Sequence record: MN091626.1
DNA: 64,000 nucleotides
Reading direction: 5' to 3' (one strand)
Part shown: positions 1,095 to 29,270 of the stretch, piece after piece
How the letters are laid out: every line of letters starts with the position of its first letter
How positions within the stretch are numbered: position 1 is the stretch's first letter
Translations under genes and position numbers: made by a program
Notes under the pieces: generated by a model
The model's input: the letters and a program-made list of their open reading frames with translations, nothing else
The model's database searches: none
What the model was told of the DNA's origin: nothing

Positions 1095-2119
1095 TAAAGG
1101 TAGCTCAGGATAAAGCTTTTTAATTGCTGGGAAGTCCTTAGAGCTTAATGAACTACAACGTAATGAGTAATCATAAGCGTGAATGTTTAAAAATCATTAA
1201 GATTGGAAAATCAGCAGCTAATAATAAAATTTAATTGAAAATAAAATTTAAGGTATGATAAAGTTGGAAATATGGAAAGATATAGAAAATTATGAAGGTT
1301 ATTATCAAGTATCAGATAAAGGAAATGTAAAATCTTTAGAAAGAAAAGTTATTGAAAAAAAATACTGGCAAAGTCAATATTTATAAATCTAGAAACCTTA
1401 AAAAATCATATAATAAAAAAGGCTATGAGCAAGTTAGTTTGAATAAAGATAATAAAAAGAAAACTATCTTTGTTCACAGATTAGTTGCGTCTGCTTTTTT
1501 AGAAAATCCTAATAATTTACCACAGGTTAATCATAAAGACGGTATAAAAGATAATAATAATTTGGATAATTTAGAATGGGTAACTAATGCAGAAAATATG
1601 GAACATGCTCATAGTACAGGTCTTATGAAACATATCAAAATGCCTTCTGGAAAAGATCATCACATGTTTGGGAAAACAGCTTATAATAAAGGTAAAAAAA
1701 TGAGTGAAAAGCAAAGACAGGGTATGATGAAACCTATCTTGCAAATTGATATGAAAACTGGAGAAGTAGTTAATGAATTTTCAGGAGCTAAAGAAGCAGC
1801 AGATATTTTAGGTTTTTCTAGAAGATCAATAACAGATACATCAAATGGAAAACAAAAAAGTCATAAAGGTTTTTTGTGGAAGAAAAAATAATTCAATTAA
1901 ATTTTATTAAAGTTCAACGACTATCAAAAGCATGTCAAATGTGAGTAGAGTACAGCCAAGCGGTTAGTTTTTAAGTGATATTAGCTTAATGTAATACTAT
2001 TAAATGGAAAAGGAAGCATCTTAAATTTTAAGGTAAGATATAGTCTCAACGTTTAGGGAAACCCTAAAGAAGTTCATAAGAGAACTGGTATATATTAGCG
2101 ATATATATTGAAGATTTTG
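1095..2119 (+). mobile_element. Group I intron in DNA polymerase gene (1025 nt)
   Basis: P1 CUGGGU/GCUCAG with U.G at splice site; P AATTGCTGGGAA, Q AATCAGCAG, R GTTCAACGACTA, S AAGATATAGTCT; terminal G2119; splice restores frame. Confidence 0.92.
1255..1891 (+). pseudogene. Intron-encoded NUMOD4-HNH-NUMOD3/NUMOD1 homing endonuclease, frameshifted at an A8 run
   Basis: 1255-1386 encodes NUMOD4 (WKDIENYEGYYQVSDKGNVKS); HNH (VHRLVA..VNHKDGIKDNN..NLEW) is in +1 frame 1352-1891; A8 at 1355-1362. Confidence 0.8.
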
Positions 2120-3357
2120 TCCCCGACCCTGAAAAAGCTGAGGCAGAGGTAAATATTATAACTGTAGTGGACTGGAGTAAGAAGAAAGTATTAACATTTG
2201 CTCTTAAATATGATACTGATACTTATAGAGAAACTATGAAAGATCAAGATAAATTAATTAAAGACTTAAATGAAATTTATAATAATGAAAATAGTGAAAT
2301 TGGTAAAGATTTAGGTTTAGAATTTGAAATATATGAGTTAGATACAGAAATGCAAGTTATTAAATCTTTCTTGTATTATATTAATGAAATTAGTAAGCCC
2401 GATATATGTACCGCATGGAATCTAGATTATGACTTTCCTGCATTATTTGAACGTATTAGAGCTAACGGAGAAGATCCTGCAGATTATTTCTGTTCTAAAG
2501 AATTTGAAGATAAAAAAGCATATTATAAATTAGATAAAAATGCTACTGATATGGCTAATAGATCTTCTACATTTGAGACTAATTCATATACTAACTGGAT
2601 TGACCAATTAGCTTTATATGCAAATATTAATAAACCTAATGGTGCTTTGGAATCAGTTAAGTTGAATGATATTGGAGAGAAAGAAGCAGGAGTTACTAAA
2701 GATGTTTATGAAGGTTCTATTTCTGATTTACATTTTAGAGACTATTATACATTCATTCTTTATAATATTAAAGATACTGTATTAGCTGCATTAATTGAAC
2801 ATAACACTAATATGTTTGATTTATTATTCTCTATTGTAGACATGACTAGAACAAGACCTAGTAAAGCACTTAAGAAAACTATTTGTTTAAGAAATCGTAG
2901 TTCAGTATTCTTTGAAAATCAAGGATATGTATTAAGTAATAATCACTCAAAATTATTATCAGATCCGAATGCAGATAAAATTCGTGGTGGATTTGTAGCT
3001 GATATGATGTTAATTGAACGTAATGGTGATGTATTAGTTAAAGGTAAAGATATTAGATCTAATAGATTATTTAGTAATGTTTGTGACTTTGACTTAAGTT
3101 CTCTATATCCATCTATTATTAGAGCTTATAATATAACGCCTGAAGGACATGTAGGTAAAATGAATATTCTTGATAAAAATAGAATAACAGTACCTAAATA
3201 TGAGGAAGATAAAGATAACTATGATTTCAATACTGAATTCGTAAGTAAGTTTAATAGTCAAGATAGTGTTGCTTTTGCTCAAGAATTTCATGGTTTACCT
3301 TCTCTTATTAAAGCATCTGATGACATTATTAAAGAATTAGAGGAGGAAATTGGTTAA
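2120..3357 (+). CDS. Family B DNA polymerase, N-terminal subunit, exon 2 (spliced product 573 aa)
   Basis: ExoII AWNLDYDF, ExoIII YNIKD, motif A DFDLSSLYPSII; motifs B and C absent, as in split phiKZ-type PolB. Confidence 0.88.
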
Positions 3358-4139
3358 TGTCTATTATTATTGAAGAATCAAAAATAGTAAATAAATTAGT
3401 AATGACTTTTGAAGAAATATCTAAATTATTCAATAATATTGTTGATGGAAGTAAGTATATTAGTTTAAATAAAAATATTATAACAAATCATTCTAAGTCA
3501 GATGACAATCCTAATTCAGTTGAAGTGGAAATTATAGAAGATAATCCAATTTACGATTATCTTCTACCTATTGAAAATTGTGTTTTTAGTGTAGAAGACT
3601 TTATTGAAGTAAGAAAGAATAAGGGAGATAAAATTGTTAAAGTTGAATTTTTCAATGAAATCGATAATAGTGGTATTAAAATAACTAGAGAATCTGATTT
3701 AGAAACTATTATTAACGGTGATGAATTTGATGAAGACTTATTAGATGAAGAATTAAATTATTCACTAGATGCTATTGATTATTTTAGTTCTTTTGAACCA
3801 AGTCTAAATTTCAAATTAGATGATGATAGTTTATTGGAAATCAAGGAAAGAAAACCTTCTGAGTTCTTTAAGTTTATATTTACTGAAGATGATGTTATTG
3901 TTAAAGATCCTTATTATATTTATAATGAAGAAGACTACCTTATTGATTTTAGAACTTCTAAAAAGTATTTATTAGGATTAAAATATAAAAAGACTAAAGG
4001 AGAAACAGTTTGTCCATTAGTTAAAATAGATGTATACGCCCCAGAAACAACTGTATATAGTGAATTGATTATGATAAAATTTTCAATTTACCAAGACAAA
4101 TTTGTTGCAAAATTGAAGAATTTAGTTTATAATATATAA
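3357..4139 (+). CDS. Hypothetical protein translationally coupled to DNA polymerase
   Basis: TAATG overlap, 260 aa acidic ORF. Confidence 0.75.
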   Translation: MSIIIEESKIVNKLVMTFEEISKLFNNIVDGSKYISLNKNIITNHSKSDDNPNSVEVEIIEDNPIYDYLLPIENCVFSVEDFIEVRKNKGDKIVKVEFFNEIDNSGIKITRESDLETIINGDEFDEDLLDEELNYSLDAIDYFSSFEPSLNFKLDDDSLLEIKERKPSEFFKFIFTEDDVIVKDPYYIYNEEDYLIDFRTSKKYLLGLKYKKTKGETVCPLVKIDVYAPETTVYSELIMIKFSIYQDKFVAKLKNLVYNI

Positions 4140-4182
4140 TGTGAAAAAATACTTATAAATTAAGAGAAAATTCTAAAAAGTA

Positions 4183-6651
4183 TTGAAAAGGAGTGTTTTG
4201 AATTTGGCTGATGAGAATAAAACTCAGAGAAGTATAAATAATCTCAACAGAGATATGGTCAGAGGATTAGGAGATGAAGAAAATCCTAAGAACTTATCTG
4301 ATAATATAAATGATTTTGATGATAGGCTAAAAAAGATAAGACGTAAAAGTAATCATGGTAATAGTAATGGTGATATTCTATCTTTAGCATCTAAAGTAAA
4401 TGGTAAAGATAGAAATGCTAGAAGAACTAATAATACAAGTGATGATAAAAAAGATTTCATTAAAGACTTTATAGAAGAGAATATTGAAAATCAAGATTTT
4501 TCATCTGAAATTGCTAGAGTATCTAGATATGATGACTATAGAATTATAGATAAGTTTATACCTGAAATATCAACAAGTATTGATGTATTCGCTACTTCTA
4601 TTATCGCACCTGACGATACTTCTAAATTATCATTGATGTATCGTTATGGTGATACAAATAATAAAGATGAATCAGAAAATAAAGAAGTTTTAAATGAATT
4701 AGATAGAATTGTAAAGAAATATAATTTAGACAATTTAACATACACTTCTATTCGTGATGGTTTATTATTAGGTGATGTATTCTACATTATTAAAGATACT
4801 AAATCTGATTTTGAAGAAATACTTAATGAAAATGATGATGTATTAGGAAGAGAAACACGAGAAGATCAAAAAGTGATTAATGAATCATTTATAGATCAGA
4901 ATCTTAAAGAATCTGATTTAGACATTGTAATTAATGAATTTAATAGTCAATTTGAAAAACCTATTAAAGATGAAAATCAATTAAATGAACAAAGAGCTAA
5001 TTTTAAAAATGAAATATTAAAGAGCATTAATGAGAATGTAGCTTTCTTTGAAAATTCTTCTGAATTACTATCTGATATAGGTAAATACAAAGGCTCTAAT
5101 GACTTACAATCATTTTTAAATAAAGCAGATAACAAAAATAAATCTAGTAAATTAAAATCTGGTTCAGTTTATTTTAGATCTGTAGAGCCTGAAGACATGA
5201 TTAAATTAGAAATTGATGGAATGTGTATTGGTTATCTTTATATTGAGCCTGATTCTGGAACTGATTTAAGAGGAGGAGCTAATCCTTTATTATCTGCCAT
5301 GAATAATTTAATGGGTGACGGTTATCAGAAACAAGGTCAGACAGGGTCATTCGCAAACGGTATGGGAGTTACTAACTTAGATCCTGTTACTGGTAATGTT
5401 GCAGGAAATAATATGTCTAGCAATTCTAAAAATCCTAATTCAGGAATGAATGCTACATCCGGTTCATATTATGAAAATGGAAATACTGCTATGGCGTATC
5501 AAGGACTAGTTGATGTTATAGTTAAAGGTATTTCTCAAAAAATTAATATGGACTTCATTAATAAAAATGATTCATTTAAAGATATTATATATAGATTAAT
5601 TCGTAAGAATTATATTATTGAAAATGGTATTAAAATGACATTCTTAGAAGCTGATGAAGTATTTCATCACAAATTAGACAGTCAAAAAACTTATGGAGTT
5701 TCTAAACTTAATAAATCATTATTCTTTGCTAAATTATATTTAAGTACATTAATAACTACAATGATGGTTAAATTAAATCAATCAAGAGATAGACGTGTAT
5801 TTAGAGTTAATGCAGGTTTAGATGATGATTATGAAGGAACTGTAGAAGAAATAATTCGTAATGTAAGACAAAATGAAATGTCTACAGGTTTATTTGGTGA
5901 TGGAACTTCAGTTCAAACATTATTTAATCAAGTAGGTAACTTAGAAAACATGTATATTCCTCAAAATAAAGAGGGTACTTCACCTTTAGAAATAGATACA
6001 ATTTCTGGTATTCAAGTTGATATTAATGATGAATTCTTAGAATGGCTTAAGAAATCAGTTATATCAGGTACAGGAGTTCCTTTAAATTATATTGATGCTG
6101 AGACTGAAACTGATTACGCTCGTTCATTATCAATGCAGAATAATAACTTTGTAAGACGTGTAGTTAACTATCAAAAATCATTCGGTGAATTCTACACTCA
6201 AGTATTAAGAAAGCTTTATTATTTAGAAAATGTAAATATTAAAGATAAAAAATATAATGAAGAATTAAATAATAAATTACAAGAAATTGAAGCTTACTTC
6301 CCAGCACCTGTATTCTTAAACTTAGGAAATCTTAATGAAGAAGTTGGAGCTGTAACACAAATGATAGATTTCTTAGTTCCTTTATACACTTCAGAAGCTA
6401 CTGGTGACGAAGAAGAAGATGATAATGAAAAATTAAAACGTCTATTCCGTAAAGAACTAGTTCAACAAGAATTCATGTCTAATTTAGATTACGATAGATA
6501 TGAAAATATCATTAACAATATTAAAGATGAAATAAATAAAGACAAAAAGAAAAATGACATGACAAACAATAATAATGCTGATGGAGACGATTTAGCTTCT
6601 CCAAATGATTCTGAAAATGATTCAGATGATAATTTTGAGGACGATTTCTAA
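4183..6651 (+). CDS. Portal protein (T4 gp20-like)
   Basis: YRIIDKFIPEISTSIDVF and RDRRVFRVNAG resemble gp20 motifs; acidic tail. Confidence 0.75.
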   Translation: MKRSVLNLADENKTQRSINNLNRDMVRGLGDEENPKNLSDNINDFDDRLKKIRRKSNHGNSNGDILSLASKVNGKDRNARRTNNTSDDKKDFIKDFIEENIENQDFSSEIARVSRYDDYRIIDKFIPEISTSIDVFATSIIAPDDTSKLSLMYRYGDTNNKDESENKEVLNELDRIVKKYNLDNLTYTSIRDGLLLGDVFYIIKDTKSDFEEILNENDDVLGRETREDQKVINESFIDQNLKESDLDIVINEFNSQFEKPIKDENQLNEQRANFKNEILKSINENVAFFENSSELLSDIGKYKGSNDLQSFLNKADNKNKSSKLKSGSVYFRSVEPEDMIKLEIDGMCIGYLYIEPDSGTDLRGGANPLLSAMNNLMGDGYQKQGQTGSFANGMGVTNLDPVTGNVAGNNMSSNSKNPNSGMNATSGSYYENGNTAMAYQGLVDVIVKGISQKINMDFINKNDSFKDIIYRLIRKNYIIENGIKMTFLEADEVFHHKLDSQKTYGVSKLNKSLFFAKLYLSTLITTMMVKLNQSRDRRVFRVNAGLDDDYEGTVEEIIRNVRQNEMSTGLFGDGTSVQTLFNQVGNLENMYIPQNKEGTSPLEIDTISGIQVDINDEFLEWLKKSVISGTGVPLNYIDAETETDYARSLSMQNNNFVRRVVNYQKSFGEFYTQVLRKLYYLENVNIKDKKYNEELNNKLQEIEAYFPAPVFLNLGNLNEEVGAVTQMIDFLVPLYTSEATGDEEEDDNEKLKRLFRKELVQQEFMSNLDYDRYENIINNIKDEINKDKKKNDMTNNNNADGDDLASPNDSENDSDDNFEDDF

Positions 6652-6692
6652 TATTGACATTTGAATAACGGACTAAATACAATTCGTTATTC

Positions 6693-6708
6693 AAATTTAT
6701 ATTATATA
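6693..6708 (+). promoter_or_regulatory. Putative early promoter
   Basis: AAATTTATATTATA upstream of 6752. Confidence 0.55.
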
Positions 6709-6751
6709 AGTGTAGTACATAATATTTATTTATAAGGAGAATGAATTAGAT

Positions 6752-8665
6752 ATGGCAAATGAAGAAATTGTTTTAGATTTAAAATTAGGTAAGTACAATG
6801 ATTATTTACACTCAGATAATTATTTTGAAATTTTAGATGATTTAAAGAAAGATATCATTGGTAATCCTCAAAAAAGAATGGAAGACTATTTTGAAGACAA
6901 TATACCCAAAAGTAATTATTTCACTTTATTAGTATTAGGTAAACCTTTTAGAGATATGAATAAAGAATTTACTGAAGAGTATTTAGTTAATCCAACCGAT
7001 ATTGATGATTATTATGACTATTTTGACAAAGTTGTTGTTAATTTTATTCATGAAGGTCATGATCCAATAAAAGTTAGTCAATCAATTGCATTTGTTATTG
7101 ACGAATTGACTATATTTTCAAATGAATATATTTTACCTTTAGATGGTCCATCTATTTCATTATATGATATTATGAGATTAGCTAATGAAGATAAAGAAAT
7201 AGAAAAATTAATTAACTTTGATAAAGAAGACATTGATCATAACTTAACATATCAACAAATCATTAATGAAGTTCAAAAACCGAATATGCATAAATTGATT
7301 GATCGTATTAAATCTGATAAAGAAAACGATTATAAAACTTTCTTACATTCAGGAACAGGTATTAATAAGATACAATTGAATGAGGTTTTAAGTTTTGTAG
7401 GATATAAACCAGACATTCGTGGTGATGTTGTAACTGATATTATTGATACTTCATTTATGCGTGGTTTAAAAGATACAACACAATTTGCTATTGATGCAGA
7501 ATCTTCATTAAACGCATTAATGAACTCTAAGAATAAAGTACGTGAATCAGGTTACTTAAACCGTAAAATTACTTTATTAACTTCAGACTTAAAACTATCA
7601 GAAACTGAAGATTGTGAAAGTAAACATTTCGTTTACGTTAATATGGATAGTCAAGATAAATTAGATAGATTTAATGATAGATTCTATTATGATGATACAG
7701 ATCAAGAATTAAAATTAATTAATTCTAAAGAAGACAGTCATTTAATAGGACAAATTGTTCCATTACGTTCACCTATTACATGTGCTGAATCTAAAGGAAA
7801 AATTTGTCAAACTTGTTATGGTAAACGTTTATATAACATTAATAGAAACTTATCTGTAGGTATATTAGCTACATTAAGATTAACAGAACCTATGACTCAA
7901 AAATTACTATCAACAAAACACTTACAGGCAGTACAATTATCTGAATTCTCTTGGCCAGATATCTTTAAAGAACACTTTGAATTCTCTGGAGATAATATTG
8001 TTCCACGTAATGAAAAGACTAAAGTTATTATTGATGAAATGATTATTAATGAAGATTATGAATATGGAAGATATAAAGCTAATAGTTTTAAATTTAAAGT
8101 AGGTACTAAAACTCATACTGTTAAATCACCTGTAACTCTTAAAATACCAGACCAAAATATTGAGACTATGGATAAATTTTATGATGAAGAAGAAAATGCA
8201 TTTATATTCAGTATGAAAGACTTAAAAGAGAATTTCTTATTTAATATTAAAATTAAAAATGAAGGCGTTGCTGACCCACTTCTTAAAATACGTTCTATAT
8301 TAGAAAGTACTAAATATATTAGAAATGACTATGAAGAAAATAATTATCAAGCTATGTTTAATGATGTAACAGATTTATTACTTAAATCAGGTACAGACGT
8401 TATGAGTGTTCATTTAGAAACTATTATTAGAAATATGGTATTCTTAAATGAAGATTATAAAGAAAGAACTAAATATAGAGACCCTGAATTTGAACCTGAT
8501 ATTGAATTGAAAAATGTAGGTAGTGCTATTTTAAGTTCACCTTCACCAGTTCAATCATTAATCTTTGAAAAGATTAAAGCTCAGTTAAGCACTGATGAAA
8601 CTAATAACTTCTTCAGTAAAGATGGAGATTCAATGTTCGATCCATTATTTGATTTTGATATTTAA
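6752..8665 (+). CDS. RNA polymerase beta-prime C-terminal subunit, probably non-virion RNAP
   Basis: SGYLNRK bridge-helix region, RSPITC..ICQTCYG zinc site, TEPMTQKLLSTKH trigger-loop region; size, early promoter and nearby SF2 helicase fit phiKZ gp74-like. Confidence 0.85.
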   Translation: MANEEIVLDLKLGKYNDYLHSDNYFEILDDLKKDIIGNPQKRMEDYFEDNIPKSNYFTLLVLGKPFRDMNKEFTEEYLVNPTDIDDYYDYFDKVVVNFIHEGHDPIKVSQSIAFVIDELTIFSNEYILPLDGPSISLYDIMRLANEDKEIEKLINFDKEDIDHNLTYQQIINEVQKPNMHKLIDRIKSDKENDYKTFLHSGTGINKIQLNEVLSFVGYKPDIRGDVVTDIIDTSFMRGLKDTTQFAIDAESSLNALMNSKNKVRESGYLNRKITLLTSDLKLSETEDCESKHFVYVNMDSQDKLDRFNDRFYYDDTDQELKLINSKEDSHLIGQIVPLRSPITCAESKGKICQTCYGKRLYNINRNLSVGILATLRLTEPMTQKLLSTKHLQAVQLSEFSWPDIFKEHFEFSGDNIVPRNEKTKVIIDEMIINEDYEYGRYKANSFKFKVGTKTHTVKSPVTLKIPDQNIETMDKFYDEEENAFIFSMKDLKENFLFNIKIKNEGVADPLLKIRSILESTKYIRNDYEENNYQAMFNDVTDLLLKSGTDVMSVHLETIIRNMVFLNEDYKERTKYRDPEFEPDIELKNVGSAILSSPSPVQSLIFEKIKAQLSTDETNNFFSKDGDSMFDPLFDFDI

Positions 8666-8678
8666 AACAATATAATTC

Positions 8679-8710
8679 AACCAAACTTCTATTAACTTAG
8701 GAGTTTGGTT
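8679..8710 (+). terminator. Terminator-like hairpin
   Basis: AACCAAACTTCT/AGGAGTTTGGTT stem, loop ATTAACTT. Confidence 0.6.
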
Positions 8711-8739
8711 ATATATAATAACTCTAGGAGGAATTTAAT

Positions 8740-9033: not shown

Positions 9034-9100
9034 AAAATTAATTTTTTATAATAACTGATAGATATAAAATTTTAAAGCAAAAAGGAGAATTTAATTTAAC

Positions 9101-9547: not shown

Positions 9548-9564
9548 AGAAAGAAGCTGATACT

Positions 9565-11112: not shown

Positions 11113-11132
11113 TGAAAGGTTGTTGAGGTATT

Positions 11133-19705: not shown

Positions 19706-19717
19706 TATTTAACTGTT
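19706..19717 (-). promoter_or_regulatory. Putative late promoter AACA-N6-TA
   Basis: AACA-GTTAAA-TA upstream of amidase. Confidence 0.65.
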
Positions 19718-19725
19718 CTATATTT

Positions 19726-22065
19726 TTAATACTTGATTTCTGTAGATACGATTAATTTATTTTGATATCTTCCACCTCTAGTGTAAACTTTACTATCAGT
19801 GTCACCTATATTAATACTATTTTCAGATCCATAAGCTATACATTCATCTAAGAATAAATTACCTCCTGATGAAGCTTGGAAGTCTTTTCCTTGATAACTT
19901 TCAAATGCGATACATCCTAAATTCCACGATTGTGTACCTTCATTTACATCAGCTACATTACCTCCATCATTTCTTCCATATATACCATTTATTCTAATGA
20001 TTTTTAAACCTTCATGAGTAGTTGATCCGTTATTTGATTTAACACCATTCAATCCTTTATCGGTTCCATTATCCATTCCTATACAATTAATCTCTATTAT
20101 ATTAGGTTTAGAACCATCAGCACCAATATGGTAATTTAAACCGTCAAAACTATTATAATTACCTTTACAGCTATCAAGAATAATATCTTTACCGCCAACA
20201 ATAGCAAGACCATTGTAACTTGAAGCAGAATGATAAAAATTACATTTCTTAAAGAATGTACTGTTATTTGAAGTTAAATTTAATTCAATGCAGTTTCTCC
20301 CGCCATATATATTTAAATTTTCAAAATATATATTTGAAGCTAAACTTGTTAACTGTATATTCGAAGAAGATATTAAAGGTATTACATTACTATTTGAAGG
20401 TTTATTATCATTAATATTGGAATAAACTTTAGTACCGTCAGTAAACCATGAATTAGGTGTACTTTCAACTTCATCAATACTACTTACTTTCTTTATATCA
20501 ATACTATTATCTAGCGTTACAACTTTATCGGTAGCAGATCTACTAAATTCATAAGTTCTATTTTTACCAGAAGTTAGTGTCCATGAAGGTTCATCAGCCA
20601 TAATAATATTCACATTATTACCTGTGCCTATTATATTAATGCTCTTATTAAATGCTTTTGTAATTAATGTGCCGCCAATTCTAAAATAGTTACCATCAGC
20701 AACCATAATTGTATCATTATCATTAACTTTAGGTATTACTACTTTAAAAGATTTAAATGGGTTTTCTTTAGATAAACCATCATTAGAATCATTACCATTA
20801 ACAGCATCTAAGTAGTAAGTAGTTCCGCCTGATAATCTATTAGTAGTTATATCATATTTCACTCCAAAAGTACCTTTTCCATCAGTAACAATTCTATTTT
20901 TTAATATTTCATTACCATAATTGAAATCATTAGGTTTTCTAACTGTTATTGGAAGGGTAGGTGCATAATTACCATCAAGACCGGGTAAACCTTGTAGACC
21001 TTGAGTTCCAATCTTACCTGTATCACCTTTTAATCCATTTAACTGTTCTTCAGTAAAATCAGAATACTCGAAAGGATCTCCCTTTTCACCTTTTAATAGA
21101 TCTAATTGTTCTTGAGTAAAATCGGAATATTCAAAAGGGCCACCTTTTTCACCTTTTAACTCGGATAATTGTTCTTGAGTAAAATCAGAATACTCGAAAG
21201 GATCTCCTTTTAATCCATTTAACTGTTCTTCAGTAAAATCAGAGTATTTGAAGGGGTCGCCTTTAGGACCTTGTATACCTGGATCACCTTTATACATCTC
21301 AGCATTTTCTACCATGTAATTCTTAAGATTTTCTTTGTAATCTAATAATTTATTTTCAAAATCATCTATTTTACTGTTAAATGAATCTTGTGCTAATTTT
21401 AATTCTTCAGATTTATCTTTTATAAGATTTAATTTTTCTTCAACTTTAACTACATCATTTTCCATATTCTTAACATAGTTTGTAGTCTCACTAAGTTTTT
21501 CCATTTCATCATTAAGACTCATTGTATTGTTATAATTACTATTGAATTGTTCTCTTACAGTTTCAAAATCAGTTAAAGTATCTTTCATGCTACTTAATTT
21601 ATTATTCATATCTTCTATTGTTGAAATTACATCTTCTTTTTCAGATTGTAAATCTAATTTTTTATCTTCAATACTATATTTAAAACTATCTAGCTCACTC
21701 AAATATGAATTAAGATTATCATCATCAATTAAATTTTCTTTGATTAAGTTAAGTTTTTCTCCTGCTTTTTCATTAATATTATTTATATCAGTAGATATTA
21801 TTTTTATTTGTTTAAAAGCCTCATTCACTTGAAGATATTTCTGTTTTATAAAATCTTCAATAGAGAAATAATCAGCTACGTCATATTCTCCATCTGAATT
21901 TAAATCAACATATTCATTTTTATTTACCTTTACATATTGAATATTCATTAAATCATAATAATCTAATGTATTTCTATCAACATAATAAGGTTTATTTATA
22001 GGTCCCATACCTTTACCTGGAATATAAGTTTTTTGAGGAACTATAATTAGTATACTATCTTCCAT
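19726..22065 (-). CDS. Putative fibre/appendage protein: shared N-module, coiled coil, collagen-like repeats, pectin-lyase-like beta-helix
   Basis: KGDPFxYSDFTxEQL repeats; YYLDAVNGNDSNDGLS..PFKS..DTIMVADGNY typical start of parallel beta-helix domains. Confidence 0.7.
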   Translation of the reverse strand: MEDSILIIVPQKTYIPGKGMGPINKPYYVDRNTLDYYDLMNIQYVKVNKNEYVDLNSDGEYDVADYFSIEDFIKQKYLQVNEAFKQIKIISTDINNINEKAGEKLNLIKENLIDDDNLNSYLSELDSFKYSIEDKKLDLQSEKEDVISTIEDMNNKLSSMKDTLTDFETVREQFNSNYNNTMSLNDEMEKLSETTNYVKNMENDVVKVEEKLNLIKDKSEELKLAQDSFNSKIDDFENKLLDYKENLKNYMVENAEMYKGDPGIQGPKGDPFKYSDFTEEQLNGLKGDPFEYSDFTQEQLSELKGEKGGPFEYSDFTQEQLDLLKGEKGDPFEYSDFTEEQLNGLKGDTGKIGTQGLQGLPGLDGNYAPTLPITVRKPNDFNYGNEILKNRIVTDGKGTFGVKYDITTNRLSGGTTYYLDAVNGNDSNDGLSKENPFKSFKVVIPKVNDNDTIMVADGNYFRIGGTLITKAFNKSINIIGTGNNVNIIMADEPSWTLTSGKNRTYEFSRSATDKVVTLDNSIDIKKVSSIDEVESTPNSWFTDGTKVYSNINDNKPSNSNVIPLISSSNIQLTSLASNIYFENLNIYGGRNCIELNLTSNNSTFFKKCNFYHSASSYNGLAIVGGKDIILDSCKGNYNSFDGLNYHIGADGSKPNIIEINCIGMDNGTDKGLNGVKSNNGSTTHEGLKIIRINGIYGRNDGGNVADVNEGTQSWNLGCIAFESYQGKDFQASSGGNLFLDECIAYGSENSINIGDTDSKVYTRGGRYQNKLIVSTEIKY
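21020..21270 (-). repeat. Four KGDPFxYSDFTxEQLxxL repeats (approximate bounds)
   Basis: Repeated AGTAAAATCAGAATACTCGAAAGGATCTCC-like units. Confidence 0.85.
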
Positions 22066-22102
22066 ACTATATTTCCACTCCTTTAAATTTGATCTGTAAA
22101 AT

Positions 22103-22183
22103 CCCCCTAATATATTTTTAAATCGATGATTATTCTATTCTTATAATTATTGGCTCATCGTTTAAAGTTATATATTAGGGGAA
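22103..22183 (-). promoter_or_regulatory. Long leader hairpin between late promoter and fibre gene
   Basis: CCCCTAATATA/TATATTAGGGG outer stem with inner AAATCGATGA/TCATCGTTT stem. Confidence 0.5.
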
Positions 22184-22225
22184 CTAATTTTAGTCGAAAA
22201 AACTAACGAAAATTAATTTTTATTA

Positions 22226-22237
22226 TATAATAATGTT
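22226..22237 (-). promoter_or_regulatory. Putative late promoter AACA-N6-TA
   Basis: AACA-TTATTA-TA upstream of 22065 gene. Confidence 0.55.
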
Positions 22238-22244
22238 ATAAATT

Positions 22245-24170
22245 TTAACCATTAATAATTTTAAAAATATTTTCGTTTAATAAATCTCTTTCTAATCTAC
22301 TTTCTTCAGAAAGTTTTTCCATTAATTCTTCTTCTGTATATTTATCAAAAGATACAGAATTATATCCATTAATAGAAATAGAAGATTCATTAACTTGAAT
22401 TGATTTATTTACATTTAGATCATTAATGCTTTCTTCTAAGAATTTTTTAAGACGTGTTTCATCTCTATTAGGTACATTTTCATAGGCTTCAAACACTATA
22501 TCTTCATAGTATTCTTCTAATGATTCTTCAAAACCTTCATAAAGTGAATCATCTTTATTTTTTAATTGGAAATTAATATCTTCTTCTAGCAATTCTAAAT
22601 TAACTTCTTCAGATAATCTTTCTTTAACATCTTCGTTAACTTCATCTAAAGGATTAAGATAGTTTTCTAATAAACCTGATTCTGATTCATTATTAACACG
22701 TTGAATTGTATTTATATTGAATTCTTTTTCTAAGTTTTCTAAAGTTATTTCATTATCTGTATAAAATTCTTTAAGAACTTTATTTACTTTAGGTTCAACT
22801 ACAATAACTTTCTTAAATCCTAAACCGAAATCAACTTTATCAACTAATAATGAAGAAGGATTATATACTTTAGGAACTTCATCCATATAAGATTCTTTAC
22901 TAATAACGATATCAACACGTTTACCTAAAGATTCAGATAAAGCATTTGTATATCTAATTAAGTCTTTAATTGTGTAAGTTTCATTAACTTCTTCTTCATT
23001 AATAACTTTAGTTTTAAATTCAATATCAGTAGATCCACAATTTTCACATACTAATTCATCTTCATTAACGTTAGGATCAACTGTTTCTTGAACTCCACAT
23101 TCGTTACAAATTACTTCTCCAACTTCTTTAGAAGTTTTTAAAGCTTCTTCAAGTTCTCCATTACAATTTTCACATACTAATTCATTTGATTCATTCATTG
23201 TTAGATTACTTCCACAATTTTCACAAACAGCTTTTCCATTTTCAATTTTACCAGTTTCACTTAAAATACGTCTAACAGTTTCAATTGATTCATTAGTAAC
23301 GAAAATTTGTTTTTCATTTTCGTTTTCTAATTTAAATGTATTTAATAGAGTTTCATGAATTTTTTCTGCATGATTTTTAAATGATTTAACTACAGCGAAA
23401 TCAGAATCCTCTCTCATATATACGTATGGGAAAGCTTGATTATTTTTATCATCAACATAATTTTCATTAGCAATTATATTTTGTTTTTCAGTATTAACTT
23501 CTTTAGATTCTGGAGTACCTATAGCATATCCTACTTCAGCAGGTGTGTCTAATATTCCATTTTTTAAATCTACAAAAGTAAATTCAGGAACTGGATCTTT
23601 ATCGTATAAATAAGTTTCAGTAACTGCTCCTCCAACACTTGGAGAACCATTTGCAGCAGACAAACCTCCATCACTAACAGAACTTGCATTGGTATTTGCA
23701 TTAGAAGTACTTACTGAATAAGTCGCATGTGGACCAAAAGTAGTAGGAACCATCATTTGAGAATCTAAGAATTTAGCTCTTAATTCAGAATATCTTGGTT
23801 GTTTCTTATCTTCATCATCGTCTTCTTTTTCATCTTCGAATAAATAATCTTCTTCAACAGAAATTTCAGGATCTGAATTAGCTACATCAGTAATGATAAC
23901 TTCATCTTTATCAGCCACGATTGGTTGATCGTAATCAGGGTGATCCGAATCAATTACTTGAACATCATCTTCATCTTCAGCATCTTCAATTTCATCAAGA
24001 TCATCAGATTCCTCATCATCAATTTCTTCTTCATCTTCATTAATTATTTCGTTAAACATTTCTTCTAATTCTTCATCATCTTCAGGAATATCACGTTTTA
24101 ATTCTTCATTTTCATCATCATTTAAATCATCTTCAAATAATAACATATCATTTTTATTTTCTTCAGACAT
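22245..24170 (-). CDS. Highly acidic zinc-ribbon protein, possible prohead core/scaffold
   Basis: D/E-rich N-terminus; CENCG..CENCN and CNECG..CENCG; many L/V-x-E motifs. Confidence 0.55.
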   Translation of the reverse strand: MSEENKNDMLLFEDDLNDDENEELKRDIPEDDEELEEMFNEIINEDEEEIDDEESDDLDEIEDAEDEDDVQVIDSDHPDYDQPIVADKDEVIITDVANSDPEISVEEDYLFEDEKEDDDEDKKQPRYSELRAKFLDSQMMVPTTFGPHATYSVSTSNANTNASSVSDGGLSAANGSPSVGGAVTETYLYDKDPVPEFTFVDLKNGILDTPAEVGYAIGTPESKEVNTEKQNIIANENYVDDKNNQAFPYVYMREDSDFAVVKSFKNHAEKIHETLLNTFKLENENEKQIFVTNESIETVRRILSETGKIENGKAVCENCGSNLTMNESNELVCENCNGELEEALKTSKEVGEVICNECGVQETVDPNVNEDELVCENCGSTDIEFKTKVINEEEVNETYTIKDLIRYTNALSESLGKRVDIVISKESYMDEVPKVYNPSSLLVDKVDFGLGFKKVIVVEPKVNKVLKEFYTDNEITLENLEKEFNINTIQRVNNESESGLLENYLNPLDEVNEDVKERLSEEVNLELLEEDINFQLKNKDDSLYEGFEESLEEYYEDIVFEAYENVPNRDETRLKKFLEESINDLNVNKSIQVNESSISINGYNSVSFDKYTEEELMEKLSEESRLERDLLNENIFKIING

Positions 24171-24190
24171 TTTTAAATATCCTCCTTAAA

Positions 24191-25459
24191 TTATTTTCTA
24201 AAAGTTCCTTCAATACTATCTTTAATAATAAATAATATACACGGAAGTAATACATAATCTTCCATATTCATATCATATTTATCATCATAGTAATTAAACA
24301 CTTTACTTAATATTTTTTCTTCTATCTTTTCATCATTCATATACATTGAGATTAATTTATATCTATCATCAAAGTAAGTTAAACTTTTAGTGCCTTGATA
24401 GTCTTCATTAACTTCATTAATCTTAGTTAAATTACTCAATTCTATAAAATCGTTTAATCCATCTAATACTTCAGTGTCTTCTATACTTTTATGAACGAAG
24501 CTTATTTCTTTATACTTCTCTCTAAACATTTTTAAGAAATTATCCTTAGTGTCATTAAGAGTAATAACATTAGGTAAAGTCTTTTTATCCTTTAATTTTT
24601 CATATAGAGAGAATTTATAGTTCTTTTGATTTATTCTTTCATTCTTAGGATTTTTATCTTTATAAGGTAGTATATTAGAAAGATAAGTACTAGATTTTAC
24701 TAATAGATTATTGTCATAAATAAATCTGGATAAATTCAAATCAATATATTTAGTTGATGCAACTGCACTAAATTCATCTTCATAGTAAATAAAAGTATTT
24801 AATGAAGAATTATAGAAATGATCAATAAATATTTGTGAAAATTCATCAGCATATTTAATACTATGATTGACTTGATAGAAATCTTCTTCTAGTATCAATG
24901 ATTTATTATCTGTTCCAATATTGGAAAATACTGTTCTATATACGTTTGATACCTGATTTTCAATATCTTCTGTATTAACATTAAAATTCTGATATTGTAT
25001 TTTATAGTAAGCTGAGTTCTCTAGTGAACTCATTTCTACATTAGTTACACGATATATTCTACTAGTTGCATTTTCTTTAGACTGATATTGAAATACAATA
25101 AAATCATCTGGTAAAGGTTCAATAGTGCCTGGTAGTATAACTGCTTCAGATTCTAAATCTTTTTCAGTTCCCCATTCTTCATCCCATTCAATTGTAGGAT
25201 TCATTTCAGCTACATTATACAAAGGGAAGTCTTTTAATTTATTATATTTCAAAGGAGAATTATCTCCAATAATTTCTTCAACATTATCTAGTGAACGATC
25301 AGAAGTAGATTTCTCATGATCTTTACTATAGTATGTAACAAAACTAGGAGCACCTGCTTGAAACTTACTATATTTTTCTGTACCGGATAAATATGAGGAT
25401 ACGTAACTATTTACAATATCTTTTGGTTGTAATTCATCATTTGATATAAATGTACCCAT
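24191..25459 (-). CDS. Putative virion structural protein
   Basis: 422 aa, late promoter upstream, structural neighbourhood. Confidence 0.6.
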   Translation of the reverse strand: MGTFISNDELQPKDIVNSYVSSYLSGTEKYSKFQAGAPSFVTYYSKDHEKSTSDRSLDNVEEIIGDNSPLKYNKLKDFPLYNVAEMNPTIEWDEEWGTEKDLESEAVILPGTIEPLPDDFIVFQYQSKENATSRIYRVTNVEMSSLENSAYYKIQYQNFNVNTEDIENQVSNVYRTVFSNIGTDNKSLILEEDFYQVNHSIKYADEFSQIFIDHFYNSSLNTFIYYEDEFSAVASTKYIDLNLSRFIYDNNLLVKSSTYLSNILPYKDKNPKNERINQKNYKFSLYEKLKDKKTLPNVITLNDTKDNFLKMFREKYKEISFVHKSIEDTEVLDGLNDFIELSNLTKINEVNEDYQGTKSLTYFDDRYKLISMYMNDEKIEEKILSKVFNYYDDKYDMNMEDYVLLPCILFIIKDSIEGTFRK

Positions 25460-25498
25460 ATATTCTCATTATCCTCACTTTCTTTATTAAATTTCGTA

Positions 25499-25510
25499 TA
25501 TGGTATTGTT
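25499..25510 (-). promoter_or_regulatory. Putative late promoter AACA-N6-TA
   Basis: AACA-ATACCA-TA. Confidence 0.65.
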
Positions 25511-25537
25511 ATCTTTGAATTTTGTTTTAATATAATA

Positions 25538-25576
25538 ATCCCAATACCTTAATATTATATTAATAGGTATTGGGAT
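25538..25576 (-). terminator. Terminator-like hairpin, CCCAATACC family
   Basis: ATCCCAATACCT/AGGTATTGGGAT; same stem at 56317-56351. Confidence 0.65.
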
Positions 25577-25594
25577 AAAATATTTTATAAAAAA

Positions 25595-26104
25595 TTAAAG
25601 ACCAAATTCTTTATCTAAAGATTCTTCTAAAGAACTAATATCTTCATTAGTTTGTTCTTCTTCTTTAACAGCTTCAAATAAGCTAAATAAAGCTTCTTCA
25701 ACAGGACTTACAACTGAATCAATTTTATTTTCCATAGCTTCATTTAATTTAGTAGGTAATTTTTTGAATAGAGCGATGTATTTCTTTTCATTATTTCTAG
25801 CCCAAGCTTCTGCTTTTTTAGGACTTTGGAAAGCACATACTCGAATAAAACGATTTAAAATAGATGTTTTACCTTTAGCATCAATTACTCTGTAAGTAAA
25901 TATAACTGTTCCATCTTCATGAGCATCTAAAGCAAATTCATTTTCATCAAATTTTTTACCTTTAGCGATAACTTTAGCTTTCTTTTTAGTAGCACGTGCT
26001 ATGAATTTTTCCTCTGTATCTTTATCAGAAGGGTTTACCATTTTTCTTAATGTATCCTTCACATTAGCTTCATTTAATAATGTTTCTTGTAAAAAATCTT
26101 CCAT
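25595..26104 (-). CDS. Putative internal head protein
   Basis: Acidic ends with LNEA/LEES motifs around a basic core; resembles 26146-26706. Confidence 0.55.
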   Translation of the reverse strand: MEDFLQETLLNEANVKDTLRKMVNPSDKDTEEKFIARATKKKAKVIAKGKKFDENEFALDAHEDGTVIFTYRVIDAKGKTSILNRFIRVCAFQSPKKAEAWARNNEKKYIALFKKLPTKLNEAMENKIDSVVSPVEEALFSLFEAVKEEEQTNEDISSLEESLDKEFGL

Positions 26105-26145
26105 AATTATAATTCCTACTTTCGTAATTTATTTTTCTATATAAT

Positions 26146-26706
26146 TTAGTTTAATTTAAATTCCTCATCTAATATTTTTTCTAAATTTTCAATAACTTTA
26201 TCATCTTCATCAATTTCAGGTTTCTTATCAGGGGCTTTCTTGAAGATAGATACAAATTTATTTCCATTACTTTGAACCCATTTTTGTGCTTCTTTGAAAC
26301 GATCTGCAACTATTCCAATAGGTATTCTTCGAATTTTATCTTTACCTTTATATTTAACAGGTACTTCTAAAGCAGCGTTTTTACCACCAGTACGTTTGGC
26401 CACTACTACAATATTGCTTGAATCAATTCTAATACCATTACTTTTAGCTTTTATTTTAAAATTCATACAAGCTTTAGCAAAATCCGCTTCAAGCGTATCA
26501 GGTTCAACAATTCCTTCTTGAACTGCAACATCCGAAGTATTACCGCAATCTTCACATACTAATTGACCTGATTCATTTGGAGACATTTTAGAACCACATT
26601 CTTCACAAATAGGCTCTTCTTTATCAGTATCAATATCACGATTTAATTCTTCATTAACTAAACCAAATTCTTTATCTAAAGATTCTTCTAAAGATTTAAA
26701 ATCCAT
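26146..26706 (-). CDS. Putative internal head protein with zinc ribbon
   Basis: CEECG..CEDCG; starts SLEESLDKEFGL; late promoter upstream. Confidence 0.55.
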   Translation of the reverse strand: MDFKSLEESLDKEFGLVNEELNRDIDTDKEEPICEECGSKMSPNESGQLVCEDCGNTSDVAVQEGIVEPDTLEADFAKACMNFKIKAKSNGIRIDSSNIVVVAKRTGGKNAALEVPVKYKGKDKIRRIPIGIVADRFKEAQKWVQSNGNKFVSIFKKAPDKKPEIDEDDKVIENLEKILDEEFKLN

Positions 26707-26739
26707 TATATTTTCCTCATTTCTATTTATATTTATTAA

Positions 26740-26751
26740 TATTAATGTGTT
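26740..26751 (-). promoter_or_regulatory. Putative late promoter AACA-N6-TA
   Basis: AACA-CATTAA-TA. Confidence 0.6.
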
Positions 26752-26763
26752 ATCTTAAATAAA

Positions 26764-26796
26764 TTGCCCTAATGACAATTTTTATCATTAGGACAA
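26764..26796 (-). terminator. Terminator-like hairpin after RNAP beta
   Basis: TTGCCCTAATGA/TCATTAGGACAA. Confidence 0.55.
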
Positions 26797-26802
26797 TTAA
26801 AA

Positions 26803-27970
26803 TTATAGCATATCTTTTACTTTACGTTTTAATTCTATTAAAGCTTTATTAGTGAAAAGCATTAAATAAATATCAGTAGTCATACGAGATACGATACTTA
26901 ATGGAGAGAATATAGCTTCAATTTCCTCGTCAGGTCTATATTCTGCATAAGGAGATTCATTAGGAGGAGTAACATCAGCAATAACTGTTTTACATGCTCC
27001 ATAGAAACTGATCTTATCACCAATACTCATATCATCTTCATACTCTGTGAAGATTTCAATAAGTACTCCATCTACTTTCTCACCTTTAATTTTCTCACTA
27101 TTAATTTTCTCTACAGCTGGAATATCTACATCTAATCCAGGTAATGTAGATTTATTATCTTTAACTGCATTTTTGTATTCTCTATATTTACTTTTAGATT
27201 TATTAATATAACTATTAACTAATTTAGCTAATGTAGGAGACATATTTTCAATATCATCATTATAATAGATATTTACTTTTTTAATTTCTCCAGTATATTT
27301 AGATCTAACAGCTCTATTAGAAATATCTTGTATTTCTTGTTCAAATTCAGAACCGATTTTATCTAATAAAGAACCAATACCTTCATCATCAAATGAATTC
27401 TCAAATATCATTAATGGATCTCCTGTACGTACATTTTGACCTTCTTTAACAATATATTGAATATTTGTATTAGAAGCTAAATTAACTGTTTTCTTCATAG
27501 TAACTTTAGTTGACATTGCTTCAGACATACTGTTAGAAATAATAGAACTATCTTCGTACGTGCCATAGCTTGAAGCAACTGCAACTTTAGATAATTTACC
27601 AGCAGCAAATTGAATATCATTATTACTGCCAGATCCTGCAAAGTAACTATCATTTTTAGCTAATACTTGTCCTTTATTAAATTTCTTACCTACTTCAAAT
27701 TGTGGAGTAAGTTTATTATTTTGATAGAAACCACCATTGGAGTTCTTAGCAAGTTTTTCAGATATATCAATTACATCTTTATCCCCATTAATGTATTCAA
27801 CAAGCATTAATCCTGTTTTCTCATTGATAGAAGTTACTTTACCATCTTCTTTAGCTTTAAAAGCAAAAGTATCTGAAATTTGATAGGCTAAAGCTTTATC
27901 TACACCAGATCCAACTAAAGGACGGTCATTTGTTTTAGTTGCTATCAGGTGTTTTGCCTGAGTACCGGTC
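26803..27970 (-). CDS. RNA polymerase beta subunit (probably virion RNAP), exon 2
   Basis: TGTQAKHL, YEDS, IGDKISFYGACKTVI, FSPLSIVSRMT; frame opens well upstream of the tracked ORF start 27807. Confidence 0.88.
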
Positions 27971-29270
27971 CGATATCTTCAACAGAGATCGTAAATCTCT
28001 GCCAGTTCTCTTATGAACTTCTTTAAGATTTCCTTAAAGTCTAGACTATATCTTCACCCTATATTTTTATAGGGGATCACTATTTCGATTTAAGGGATTT
28101 TCACCCACTCCATTAACTTGAGCCCTACTCCTGTTGGTATATTTCAATACCCTAAGGGATAGTCGTTGAGCTTTTTCCTAGACAATTTTCGATTTTTTCT
28201 TTTATTTTTCCTTCTTTTTGATCTTTATAATTTATTCTTATCAGATCTAATTTTTCATGATTTTTGAAATAATCATCTTTTATTTTATCATTCTGTTTTA
28301 AGGTTTCGAATTTTTCTTTACCATTTTTATATCTAAAAGGTATAAAGTGCTGCTCACCGTCAAATTCTATACAAAGATTATATTCTTCTAAAAAGAAATC
28401 AACTCTTAAATGATTTCCTTTTATACTGAAAAGATCATCAAATTTCTTTTCTTTTTCATAAGGTATTTTCATATTATCCAAATATTCAGATATTTCTTTA
28501 GTACCTTTTGAATTACTAATATCACTACAATGAGGACAGCGATGTCCTGATGAATAAAAACTTTCCCAATTCATCTTAAATTCTCTTCCGCATTCTTCAT
28601 GTAAGATATCCATTTTAGTTCTACTATTAGAATATGAATTTGAGACTAATTCATAATCAAATTTTTCTATATAATCTTTTACTTCTTTAAGGTTTTTCCT
28701 TTTATTAGGTGCACAATGAGGACAACCATAACCCTGCTGAAGATTACTGTATGTTGATTTGAACTCATTCCCACATAAAGAATGAAATATTAATAATTTC
28801 TTTTTACTGTTTTCATATTCACTCTTTAAAATATAAACATCCTTACCATGTAAGTCATTTAATTTTTCTTGTACAACTTCATTATCAACTACTCTTCCTG
28901 CACACTTAGGACATTTATAACCTTTAATAAAATTTGATGGTGCTACATCATATACATAATTACATTTTTTATGTTTTAGTTTTAATTTATTTTTGTATAA
29001 TTCGAAATCCTTTATGAAAATATATTCATCATAATGTTTTAATCTCTCTTTACATTTCTTATGGTATTCTTCTTGTTTATTCAATTATTTCCAACCTTTC
29101 TTACGAAAAGCTTGTCTAGGAACTTAGTTGCTGATCATCCAATCTTAATGATTTTTAAGCATATCACGCTTACTGTTACCAGTTACGTTGTAGCTCATTA
29201 AGCTCTAAGGACTTCCCAGCAATTAAATGATTTTATTACATATACATTACTGTATAAGGGGACAAAATTT
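27971..29270 (-). mobile_element. Group I intron in RNAP beta gene (1300 nt)
   Basis: P1 GGGAU/GUCCC with U.G; P, Q, R GCTCAACGACTA, S AAGATATAGTCT; terminal G27971; splice yields HADSPRIGMTGTQAKH. Confidence 0.92.
28152..29084 (-). CDS. Intron-encoded homing endonuclease, three zinc-ribbon repeats plus Vsr-like (EDxHD-type) nuclease
   Basis: H..C...C.CP.C repeats; RVDFF..IEFDGEQH..NDKIK; ORF end overlaps intron R element. Confidence 0.8.
   Translation of the reverse strand: MNKQEEYHKKCKERLKHYDEYIFIKDFELYKNKLKLKHKKCNYVYDVAPSNFIKGYKCPKCAGRVVDNEVVQEKLNDLHGKDVYILKSEYENSKKKLLIFHSLCGNEFKSTYSNLQQGYGCPHCAPNKRKNLKEVKDYIEKFDYELVSNSYSNSRTKMDILHEECGREFKMNWESFYSSGHRCPHCSDISNSKGTKEISEYLDNMKIPYEKEKKFDDLFSIKGNHLRVDFFLEEYNLCIEFDGEQHFIPFRYKNGKEKFETLKQNDKIKDDYFKNHEKLDLIRINYKDQKEGKIKEKIENCLGKSSTTIP

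Follow-up and report, generated by a model that had tools for sequence, protein, structure and literature searches.

Two genes of the Staphylococcus phage PALS_2 are each interrupted by an insert that resembles a group I intron, raising the question of whether the two inserts are sister copies of one ribozyme or members of a wider family assembled from different parts. The original prediction took them for sisters, noting an identical 33-mer and 24-mer in both and a different endonuclease in each. The window analyzed here (64,000 nucleotides, nt) matches, at 100% identity, the final 64 kb of the genome of PALS_2 (MN091626.1, 268,748 bp), an AR9-like S. aureus jumbo phage, and a window position equals the record position minus 204,748. 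The host genes encode a family-B DNA polymerase exonuclease-domain protein (polB) and the beta subunit of the virion RNA polymerase (RNAP; rpoB). In the reading considered probable here, the inserts are homing-driven, recombination-shuffled mosaic introns of a known and widespread phage family, with nucleases acquired independently of the ribozymes.

The limits of the inserts were set by alignment to the uninterrupted genes of the closely related phage S6, and they agree with the limits first proposed for the two introns:

611 to 1094, plus strand: 5' exon of the polB exonuclease-domain gene (PALS2_222), collinear with uninterrupted S6_0790.
1095 to 2119, plus strand: polB group I intron, 1025 nt, with U at position -1 and a terminal G at 2119.
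2120 to 3357, plus strand: 3' exon of the polB gene (PALS2_225), placed by alignment to S6 and by the excision frame.
29271 to 32356, minus strand: 5' exon of the virion RNAP beta gene (PALS2_248), ending ...SRHADSPRIG, a conserved catalytic-core motif.
27971 to 29270, minus strand: RNAP-beta group I intron, 1300 nt, with U at position -1 and a terminal G at 27971.
26803 to 27970, minus strand: 3' exon of the virion RNAP beta gene (PALS2_246), with Pfam RNA_pol_Rpb2_6 at 7.8e-9, collinear with S6_1000.

Excising both inserts restores the frame, giving products of 573 amino acids (aa; compared with S6_0790) and 1417 aa (compared with S6_1000). Both genes are broken mid-codon, exon 1 measuring 484 nt in polB and 3086 nt in rpoB, neither a multiple of three. 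The polB 5' exon ends ...DIEVDGSQVTG, with the insert after ...FDIEVDGSQVTG, directly past the Exo I motif, and Rpb2 domain 6 is encoded by rpoB exon 2, as identified by Pfam. The polB intron is missing from S6, DC4, MarsHill, and Madawaska, and its PALS_2 form is absent from all other records searched. The rpoB intron is missing from S6, DC4, Madawaska, and SA1; MarsHill carries an orthologue, 94% identical and with the same open reading frame (ORF), in a coding sequence (CDS) annotated as joined exons. The Machias polB and RNAP genes are likewise deposited with joined exons, the former as 'DNA polymerase exonuclease domain protein', whereas the PALS_2 record annotates no intron and gives the gene pieces as separate CDS. 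Intron-split RNAP, DNA polymerase, terL, and gyrB genes were described in these staphylococcal jumbo phages by Korn et al.

Judged from sequence, both inserts are genuine group I introns, IA2-like in type, with the following elements:

1103 to 1108, plus strand: internal guide GCUCAG of the polB intron, forming P1 with exon CUGGGU at 1089-1094.
1120 to 1218, plus strand: polB P4-P6 domain, containing the 33-mer and a long P5 extension that has an A-rich bulge and an inner hairpin capped by a GNRA loop.
1222 to 1239, plus strand: 5' strand of polB P6, in perfect 18-bp pairing with 1892-1909 and enclosing the HNH gene, by direct reading.
1914 to 2119, plus strand: 3' half of the polB ribozyme, by consensus fold.
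1914 to 1925, 2012 to 2017, and 2035 to 2045, plus strand: polB R/P7, P3', and S/P7'.
2052 to 2068, 2072 to 2085, and 2087 to 2109, plus strand: polB P9, P9.1, and P9.2.
29259 to 29263, minus strand: internal guide GUCCC of the rpoB intron, forming P1 with exon GGGAU at 29271-29275.
29241 to 29256, minus strand: P2 hairpin of the rpoB intron, by ribozyme reading.
29127 to 29226, minus strand: rpoB P4-P6 domain with a long P5 extension, containing the 33-mer.
29112 to 29122 with 28175 to 28185, minus strand: rpoB P6 stem, 11 bp, enclosing the ORF.
27971 to 28169, minus strand: 3' half of the rpoB ribozyme, by consensus fold.
28158 to 28169, 28076 to 28081, 28057 to 28075, and 28044 to 28054, minus strand: rpoB R/P7, P3', P8, and S/P7'.
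28021 to 28039, 28005 to 28018, and 27981 to 28003, minus strand: rpoB P9, P9.1, and P9.2.

Each P1 is matched to its own exon, as had been claimed (CUGGGU/GCUCAG in polB, GGGAU/GUCCC in rpoB), with predicted junctions GGGU/UCCCC, that is ACUGGGU/UCCCCGAC, for polB and GGGAU/GACCGG, that is AUAGGGAU/GACCGGUA, for rpoB. The R (..UCAACGACUAUC) and S (AAGAUAUAGUC) elements, forming P7, are present in both introns. The P4-P6 consensus fold over seven introns contains 28 pairs, with six compensatory and none broken, and the GNRA-capped inner hairpin reads AUGA-GUAA-UCAU in polB, ACUG-GUAA-CAGU in rpoB, and AUUA-GAAA-UAAU in terL. Consensus folding of the 3' halves gave 9 compensatory pairs out of 52 for the rpoB type and 12 out of 51 for the polB type, involving P8, P9, and P9.2 among others; helices P7, P8, P9, P9.1, and P9.2 are present, with P7 predicted outright. 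P3, paired by eye, shows two double changes relative to BE25.

A gathering-threshold Rfam scan of the whole window returned a transfer RNA (tRNA) only and no Intron_gpI. Checking both introns against this model (RF00028), as had been suggested, yields partial local matches of 17.7, 26.1, and 15.6 bits for the ORF-split halves, the score of the rpoB intron being 26.1 bits (E=3e-4), and the ORF-free core of the paralogous gyrB intron gives a full-length match of 32.8 bits (E=1e-6); the gathering score is 50 bits. An Rfam scan of five related loci found nothing at E<=0.001. The Rfam group I model is incomplete for phage introns according to a 2025 study of Bastillevirinae introns (PMC11878797). 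The core elements are conserved across 284 phage records. The inserts might instead never be spliced, being free-standing nuclease cassettes that split the genes into separately translated pieces, or decayed remnants; this reading is hardly credible. The separate CDS of the PALS_2 record, the frameshifted HNH gene of the polB insert, and the sub-threshold Rfam scores would fit it, but not the complete group I helices, which show compensatory changes and have no disrupted pair in P4-P6, nor the mid-codon interruptions, both within conserved motifs, nor the single uninterrupted proteins in relatives, nor the essential nature of both host genes.

The shared repeats are as first described, the 33-mer being exact at 1119-1151 (+) and 29195-29227 (-), in inverted orientation, and the 24-mer exact at 2065-2088 (+) and 28002-28025 (-); no shuffle gave two matches for either. 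The 33-mer has no further occurrence beyond the polB and rpoB introns in the sequences searched. The 24-mer is also exact in the PALS_2 gyrB intron and in four unrelated IMG/VR contigs, and is therefore a family-wide P9/P9.1 core motif. R and S motifs co-occur at exactly four PALS_2 loci, gyrB, terL, polB, and rpoB, two of which lie elsewhere in the record, with limits also set against S6:

Record positions 35909 to 37174 (outside the window): gyrB intron, unannotated, with a nuclease ORF in the P1 loop followed by a compact ORF-free core.
Record positions 135540 to 137050 (outside the window): terL intron, unannotated, with an ORF in P6.

An ACUGGGU in the terL intron was considered as exon sequence in common with polB and rejected, the S6 comparison showing it to be terL guide sequence.

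Identity between the polB and rpoB introns differs sharply by region. In the 100 nt of P4-P6 they are 88% identical, upholding the claim that they share ribozyme sequence, with polB and terL also at 88% and rpoB at 94%, 91%, and 90% to the Machias rpoB1, terL2, and polB2 introns, respectively. From R to the 3' end the two are only 60% identical, compared with 73-74% between the polB and terL introns, 76% between rpoB and the BE25 lys intron, and 77% between rpoB and the Quidividi mre11 intron. Over the 166 nt aligned by BLAST, rpoB reaches 87-88% to BE25 and Quidividi, the BE25 endolysin intron being ORF-less. Within PALS_2, the nearest 3'-half relative of the polB intron is the terL intron. 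A maximum-likelihood tree of the 3' half (P7-P9.2) resolves two clades, each supported at 100/100: clade A holds the polB, terL, gyrB, Machias terL2, LY01, and MR003 nrd introns, and clade B the rpoB, MarsHill rpoB, BE25 lys, Quidividi mre11, and OPT-SC01 introns. The approximately unbiased (AU) test on the 3' half rejects a polB plus rpoB clade at p of about 6e-59, for a grouping named after the similarities had been seen. The P4-P6 tree is weak, placing polB beside terL at 61/85, and because it is poorly resolved no donor or direction can be named. The sister relationship does not survive this comparison, since the 3' halves fall in different clades and each intron has closer relatives elsewhere; the phylogenetic check against related phages goes the same way, each 3' half being more similar to other phage introns (73-77%) than the two are to each other. 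Taken on their sequences, the polB and rpoB introns are members of one large phage intron family, not a sister pair.

What they share is evidently only the P4-P6 module, with 3' halves drawn from two lineages. Clade-B relatives have a 47-nt P4-P6 domain with a short P5, whereas the rpoB introns of PALS_2 and MarsHill have the 100-nt version, as in clade-A-type introns. A 1443-nt contig from Logan ERR10857033 (L028) contains an rpoB intron at the same site with the same P1, P2, and P3, a nuclease 64% identical, and a 3' half 81% identical, but a short P5. In this contig, from an uncultured relative, a stretch of about 170 nt of RNAP-beta exon is interrupted by two introns, of which one occupies the PALS_2 site. 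Between PALS_2 and Machias, the orthologous terL introns show 91% identity in the 3' half and 80% in P4-P6. In P4-P6 the Machias terL2 intron reaches 92-94% identity with Machias introns elsewhere in that genome, and introns at three different Machias sites show 89-94%, a discordance that looks like within-genome homogenization.

At the polB site, LY01 (142 nt, ORF-less), Machias and PB50 (773 nt, with the HNH gene in a different loop) carry a different, minimal-core intron at the identical nucleotide. The P1 of the PALS_2 polB intron equals that of these mini-introns; its opening 14 nt (UAAAGGUAGCUCAG, guide included) are identical to those of LY01, and the remainder is terL-type. Within P4-P6, polB equals rpoB in columns 1-32 and 69-89, covering the outer helices and the hypervariable J4/5, where the MarsHill rpoB orthologue differs from both; in the inner P5 helices polB is closer to terL than to rpoB.

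Putative very small group I introns of about 142-150 nt were seen in relatives at L021:690-831 (the LY01 polB site), L021 about 1134-1283, L022 about 2147-2292, and L019:2761-3450. The 142-nt LY01 polB intron has about 17 nt between R and S, with no space for P8, and one LY01 region shows four tandem P4/R modules at a spacing of about 190 nt. If they splice, introns of 142-150 nt would rank among the smallest group I introns.

The same pattern might have arisen with no recombination, the four introns having homed separately from different donors, with the shared blocks kept by purifying selection and an ancestral long P5 that the relatives with a short P5 no longer have. The presence of the long P5 module in the Twort nrdE intron, which marks it as old and widespread, would suit such an account, as would the 24-mer in four unrelated contigs and the core elements in 284 phage records. 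It is nevertheless unlikely: rate differences alone are insufficient for the terL discordance (91% against 80%, with Machias P4-P6 at 89-94%), and it would leave the polB-rpoB agreement across J4/5, from which the MarsHill orthologue departs, and the union of a mini-intron P1 with a terL-type core in polB to be explained. A more specific version of the mosaic reading, held tentatively and just short of being favored outright, is that P1/guide, P4-P6, P7-P9, and nuclease genes are swapped as cassettes among co-resident introns and between jumbo and Twort-like staphylococcal phages, the polB intron being a three-way chimera built on a 142-nt mini-intron and the 33-mer a recent polB-rpoB gene-conversion tract. 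If true, this exchange would document, in natural sequences, the kind of intron domain shuffling known, to our knowledge, only from laboratory T4 crosses.

The exon flanks bear on how the introns arrived. Over the initial 30 nt of each 3' exon, PALS_2 differs from S6 at five positions in polB and eight in rpoB, against about 3% elsewhere. These differences cause no amino-acid change in polB and are all synonymous in rpoB, and the sole amino-acid change within 60 nt of either junction relative to S6 is one V/I in polB. All intron-bearing alleles, and no others, have the P1-pairing exon variants (CTGGGT; GGGAT), where S6 has CAGGCT and GGAAT. The clustering of synonymous changes at the junctions, together with these variants, points to nuclease-driven homing with co-conversion and target-site divergence and argues against reverse splicing into an S6-like allele. 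The changes suggest nuclease recognition sites at 2120-2150 and 27940-27970, diverged or co-converted.

Transposition of one intron within PALS_2, for example by reverse splicing, with re-adaptation of the guide and a swap of the endonuclease, would make the two introns true sisters. The 33-mer, exact and unique to the two loci, is in its favor, as are the 88% identity of P4-P6 with columns 1-32 and 69-89 free of differences and the survival of a polB plus rpoB clade in the AU test of that module alone. A clade-B ribozyme sits in lys, mre11, and rpoB with different guides, so ectopic moves with guide change do occur in the family. Such a history is still quite improbable here, given the separate clades of the 3' halves, the closer relatives of each intron elsewhere, and the rpoB intron with its own P1-P3 and homing endonuclease gene at the same site in MarsHill and L028. 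The proposed movement with guide re-adaptation is further contradicted by the polB P1, identical over 14 nt to that of the mini-intron resident at the same nucleotide, and reverse splicing by the exon flanks, whose co-conversion points to homing at the DNA level.

It had also been suggested that the repeats could invert the roughly 26 kb between them. Inversion at the 33-mer would place a hybrid intron between polB exon 1 and rpoB exon 2, joining these two, and likewise for the remaining pair of exons, destroying both essential genes, so that such isomers could presumably not propagate. The order of polB (+) and rpoB (-) and the strand of each are unchanged in S6, MarsHill, and Machias, and the suggestion is accordingly set aside.

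In line with the original prediction, the two introns carry unrelated nuclease genes, an HNH family gene and a zinc-ribbon/Vsr-like gene. Both lie in the P6 loop. In the polB intron the gene consists of the following parts:

1255 to 1387, plus strand: N-terminal piece of the HNH gene (PALS2_223), with Pfam NUMOD4 at 3.4e-12 and a stop after the frameshift.
1355 to 1362, plus strand: A8 homopolymer at which the HNH frame shifts by one base, by sequence reading.
1388 to 1891, plus strand: C-terminal piece of the HNH gene (HNH_3, NUMOD1, I-HmuI NUMOD-like by Pfam; phrog_59 at 7.9e-44).

The presence of an HNH ORF is borne out by Pfam, with NUMOD4, HNH_3 (1.6e-8), and NUMOD1, and the ORF is evidently a frameshifted I-HmuI-like HNH gene for a putative homing endonuclease. 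The pieces align in order to the intact 194-aa HNH protein of Machias, the N-terminal piece being 58% identical to its N-terminus, and the nearest phage homologues of the C-terminal piece are only about 41% identical. Orthology of the HNH genes at the polB site in PALS_2 and Machias was considered and rejected, their 41% identity being like that of unrelated phage HNH genes. The gene occupies two frames instead of one, and the record annotates two CDS; the A8 frameshift could be a real inactivating mutation or a homopolymer sequencing error. The PALS_2 genome is presumed, like those of its relatives, to have uracil-substituted DNA. The architecture (NUMOD4-HNH_3-NUMOD1/I-HmuI NUMOD-like) and the DNA polymerase host gene are shared with I-HmuI of the SPO1/SP82 DNA polymerase introns, while the low identity to the best homologues and the A8 frameshift set the PALS_2 gene apart from I-HmuI-type nicking enzymes.

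The nuclease of the rpoB intron is encoded as follows:

28152 to 29084, minus strand: intron ORF PALS2_247, 310 aa, with three treble-clef zinc-ribbon repeats (DUF4379) and a C-terminal nuclease domain, by Pfam.

PALS2_247 matches phrog_559 at 2.7e-68, and across 32-38 homologues residues D229, E240, G243, H246, D266, and K269 are invariant, with D242 at least 90% conserved. With the EDxHD motif as defined in PMC3239194, the conserved E, D, H, D are present as candidate catalytic residues E240, D242, H246, and D266. In a Foldseek search with the AlphaFold model (predicted local distance difference test score 85), whole-protein results were dominated by zinc-ribbon matches, with E. coli Vsr (1vsr) at rank 17, at probability 0.91 and a target template modeling score of 0.53 with a poor E of 0.3. 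AbaSI, whose cleavage domain is Vsr-like, was matched at probability 0.66. AbaSI is described in PMC4081097 as a PvuRts1I-family restriction enzyme. A phmmer search of PALS2_247 against PDB gave no match, and a profile search gave weak matches only, with 3R3P (I-Bth0305I) at E=0.52. Some homologues are labeled 'very-short-patch-repair endonuclease' by JGI, and phrog_559 has been linked to a VSR domain and to terL introns of Bastillevirinae (PMC11878797). Zinc-ribbon/Vsr-like paralogues, all in phrog_559 and 28-37% identical to one another, occupy three of the four PALS_2 introns, with HNH in polB only.

PALS2_247 resembles I-Bth0305I and the EDxHD nucleases (PMC3239194) and the phrog_559 nucleases (PMC11878797) in being intron-encoded with a putatively Vsr-like C-terminal nuclease and conserved acidic and histidine residues. 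It differs from I-Bth0305I in its N-terminus: Pfam and the model show no NUMOD2/helix-turn-helix region in PALS2_247, and tandem DUF4379 zinc ribbons stand in its place. From its sequence and model, the protein would work like an EDxHD/Vsr-type homing nuclease with a zinc-ribbon targeting module.

Both ORFs had been placed just upstream of the R element, and their location in the P6 loop holds, but the rpoB ORF reads through R. Its frame continues through P6' and R to end at 28152, which means that the terminal residues SSTTIP are specified by ribozyme-core sequence. Homologues belonging to other introns also end in SSTTI, with the R element GCUCAACGACUAUC as the coding sequence. In Machias and LY01 the nuclease ORF extends far into the 3' half, and the terL ORF reads R in another frame. 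The MR003 nrd intron (L020) has a clade-A 3' half 79% identical to polB over 177 nt, with an ORF that by eye looks GIY-YIG; if GIY-YIG is confirmed, this scaffold would be shown to host a third family of nucleases.

Under the mosaic reading, each transcribed intron would fold as a ribozyme, use guanosine as the cofactor for its own excision, and join GGGU/UCCCC or GGGAU/GACCGG. Its P6-loop homing nuclease would cut intron-less alleles during co-infection, and recombinational repair after cutting would spread the intron and co-convert the exon flanks. Homologous recombination or gene conversion, acting at conserved core sequences, would pass the P4-P6 module from one intron to another, the polB intron would retain the P1/guide of a smaller intron earlier resident at that site in relatives, and nuclease genes would be gained independently of the ribozymes. 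Several points weigh against this reading. Splicing of both PALS_2 introns is itself a prediction, and all Intron_gpI scores fall below the gathering score. For P4-P6 alone the AU test keeps a polB plus rpoB clade (p=0.23), the module tree being unresolved. The clade-B relatives could owe their short P5 to deletions, with no gain having taken place in PALS_2 and MarsHill. Mini-intron and large polB intron have no common sequence after S, so replacement of the polB 3' end would go beyond a simple double crossover. The breakpoints within the module were picked post hoc and many of the differences are paired compensatory changes, which makes the pattern inside P4-P6 only suggestive. Finally, the HNH frameshift in the deposited sequence may mean that the polB intron has lost its mobility, unless the A8 is a sequencing error.

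Homologous group I introns with unrelated nucleases in one phage are established in T4, Twort, phage K, SPO1, and SP82. The T4 td, nrdB, and nrdD introns carry I-TevI and I-TevII (GIY-YIG) and I-TevIII (HNH), and domains have reportedly been observed to shuffle spontaneously from one T4 intron to another. PALS_2 is like T4 in having several homologous group I introns per genome with unrelated nucleases and recombination at the conserved core; in T4 the shuffling was observed, whereas in PALS_2 it is deduced from natural sequences, with modules crossing phage families (jumbo, Herelleviridae). Twort introns are said to self-splice, the nrdE intron being a self-splicing group I intron. The 5' block with P4-P6 is 79-85% identical to this Twort nrdE intron (AF485080, I-TwoI), polB reaching 79% over 145 nt, and a long P5 extension and an ORF in the P6 loop are common to both. 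In P2, P3, and all of the 3' half the rpoB intron resembles the lys and mre11 introns of Sepunavirus (87-88%), which have the 47-nt P4-P6 domain against 100 nt in PALS_2. The Twort and Sepunavirus introns differ in host genes and guides, and also in nucleases: they have I-TwoI, an I-HmuI-like HNH, or no nuclease at all in place of a zinc-ribbon/Vsr-like ORF. The jumbo phages of Korn et al. belong to the same clade, with introns in the same host genes (virion RNAP beta, polB exonuclease subunit, terL, gyrB), the exon junctions there coming from protein alignment only, without ribozyme or intron-family analysis. Vsr-type intron nucleases and introns in these genes of staphylococcal jumbo phages are thus already established. 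The new part is modest: the PALS_2 introns were unannotated, the polB form is unique among records, and the evidence for natural module shuffling is unusually clear.

Three other features were seen in passing. At record positions 23601-26381 (L005), outside the window, an unannotated gap of 1.3 kb comes before a 'retron-type RNA-directed DNA polymerase'; this may be a group II intron. At 25595-26706 (-) of the window, two adjacent ORFs look like tandem paralogues with similar C-terminal parts, the first ending ..SLEESLDKEFGL and the next starting MDFKSLEESLDKEFGL. A tRNA gene at 36517-36588 (+), with an Rfam score of 67.7 bits and anticodon GUU (Asn), fits the published PALS2 Asn-tRNA.

These findings reveal no new kind of element, and their immediate consequence is a correction of the annotation, in which five CDS (PALS2_222/225, PALS2_246/248, and the split HNH gene) become two presumably spliced essential genes and one broken nuclease gene, with the gyrB and terL introns added. 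The four paralogous introns, the intron-less S6 and DC4, the MarsHill and Machias orthologues, and the LY01 and PB50 mini-introns form a natural data set that allows tests of module and nuclease exchange among group I introns and of exon-flank reshaping by homing. The loci are also sites of expected biased inheritance among co-infecting relatives, which is relevant to phage work.

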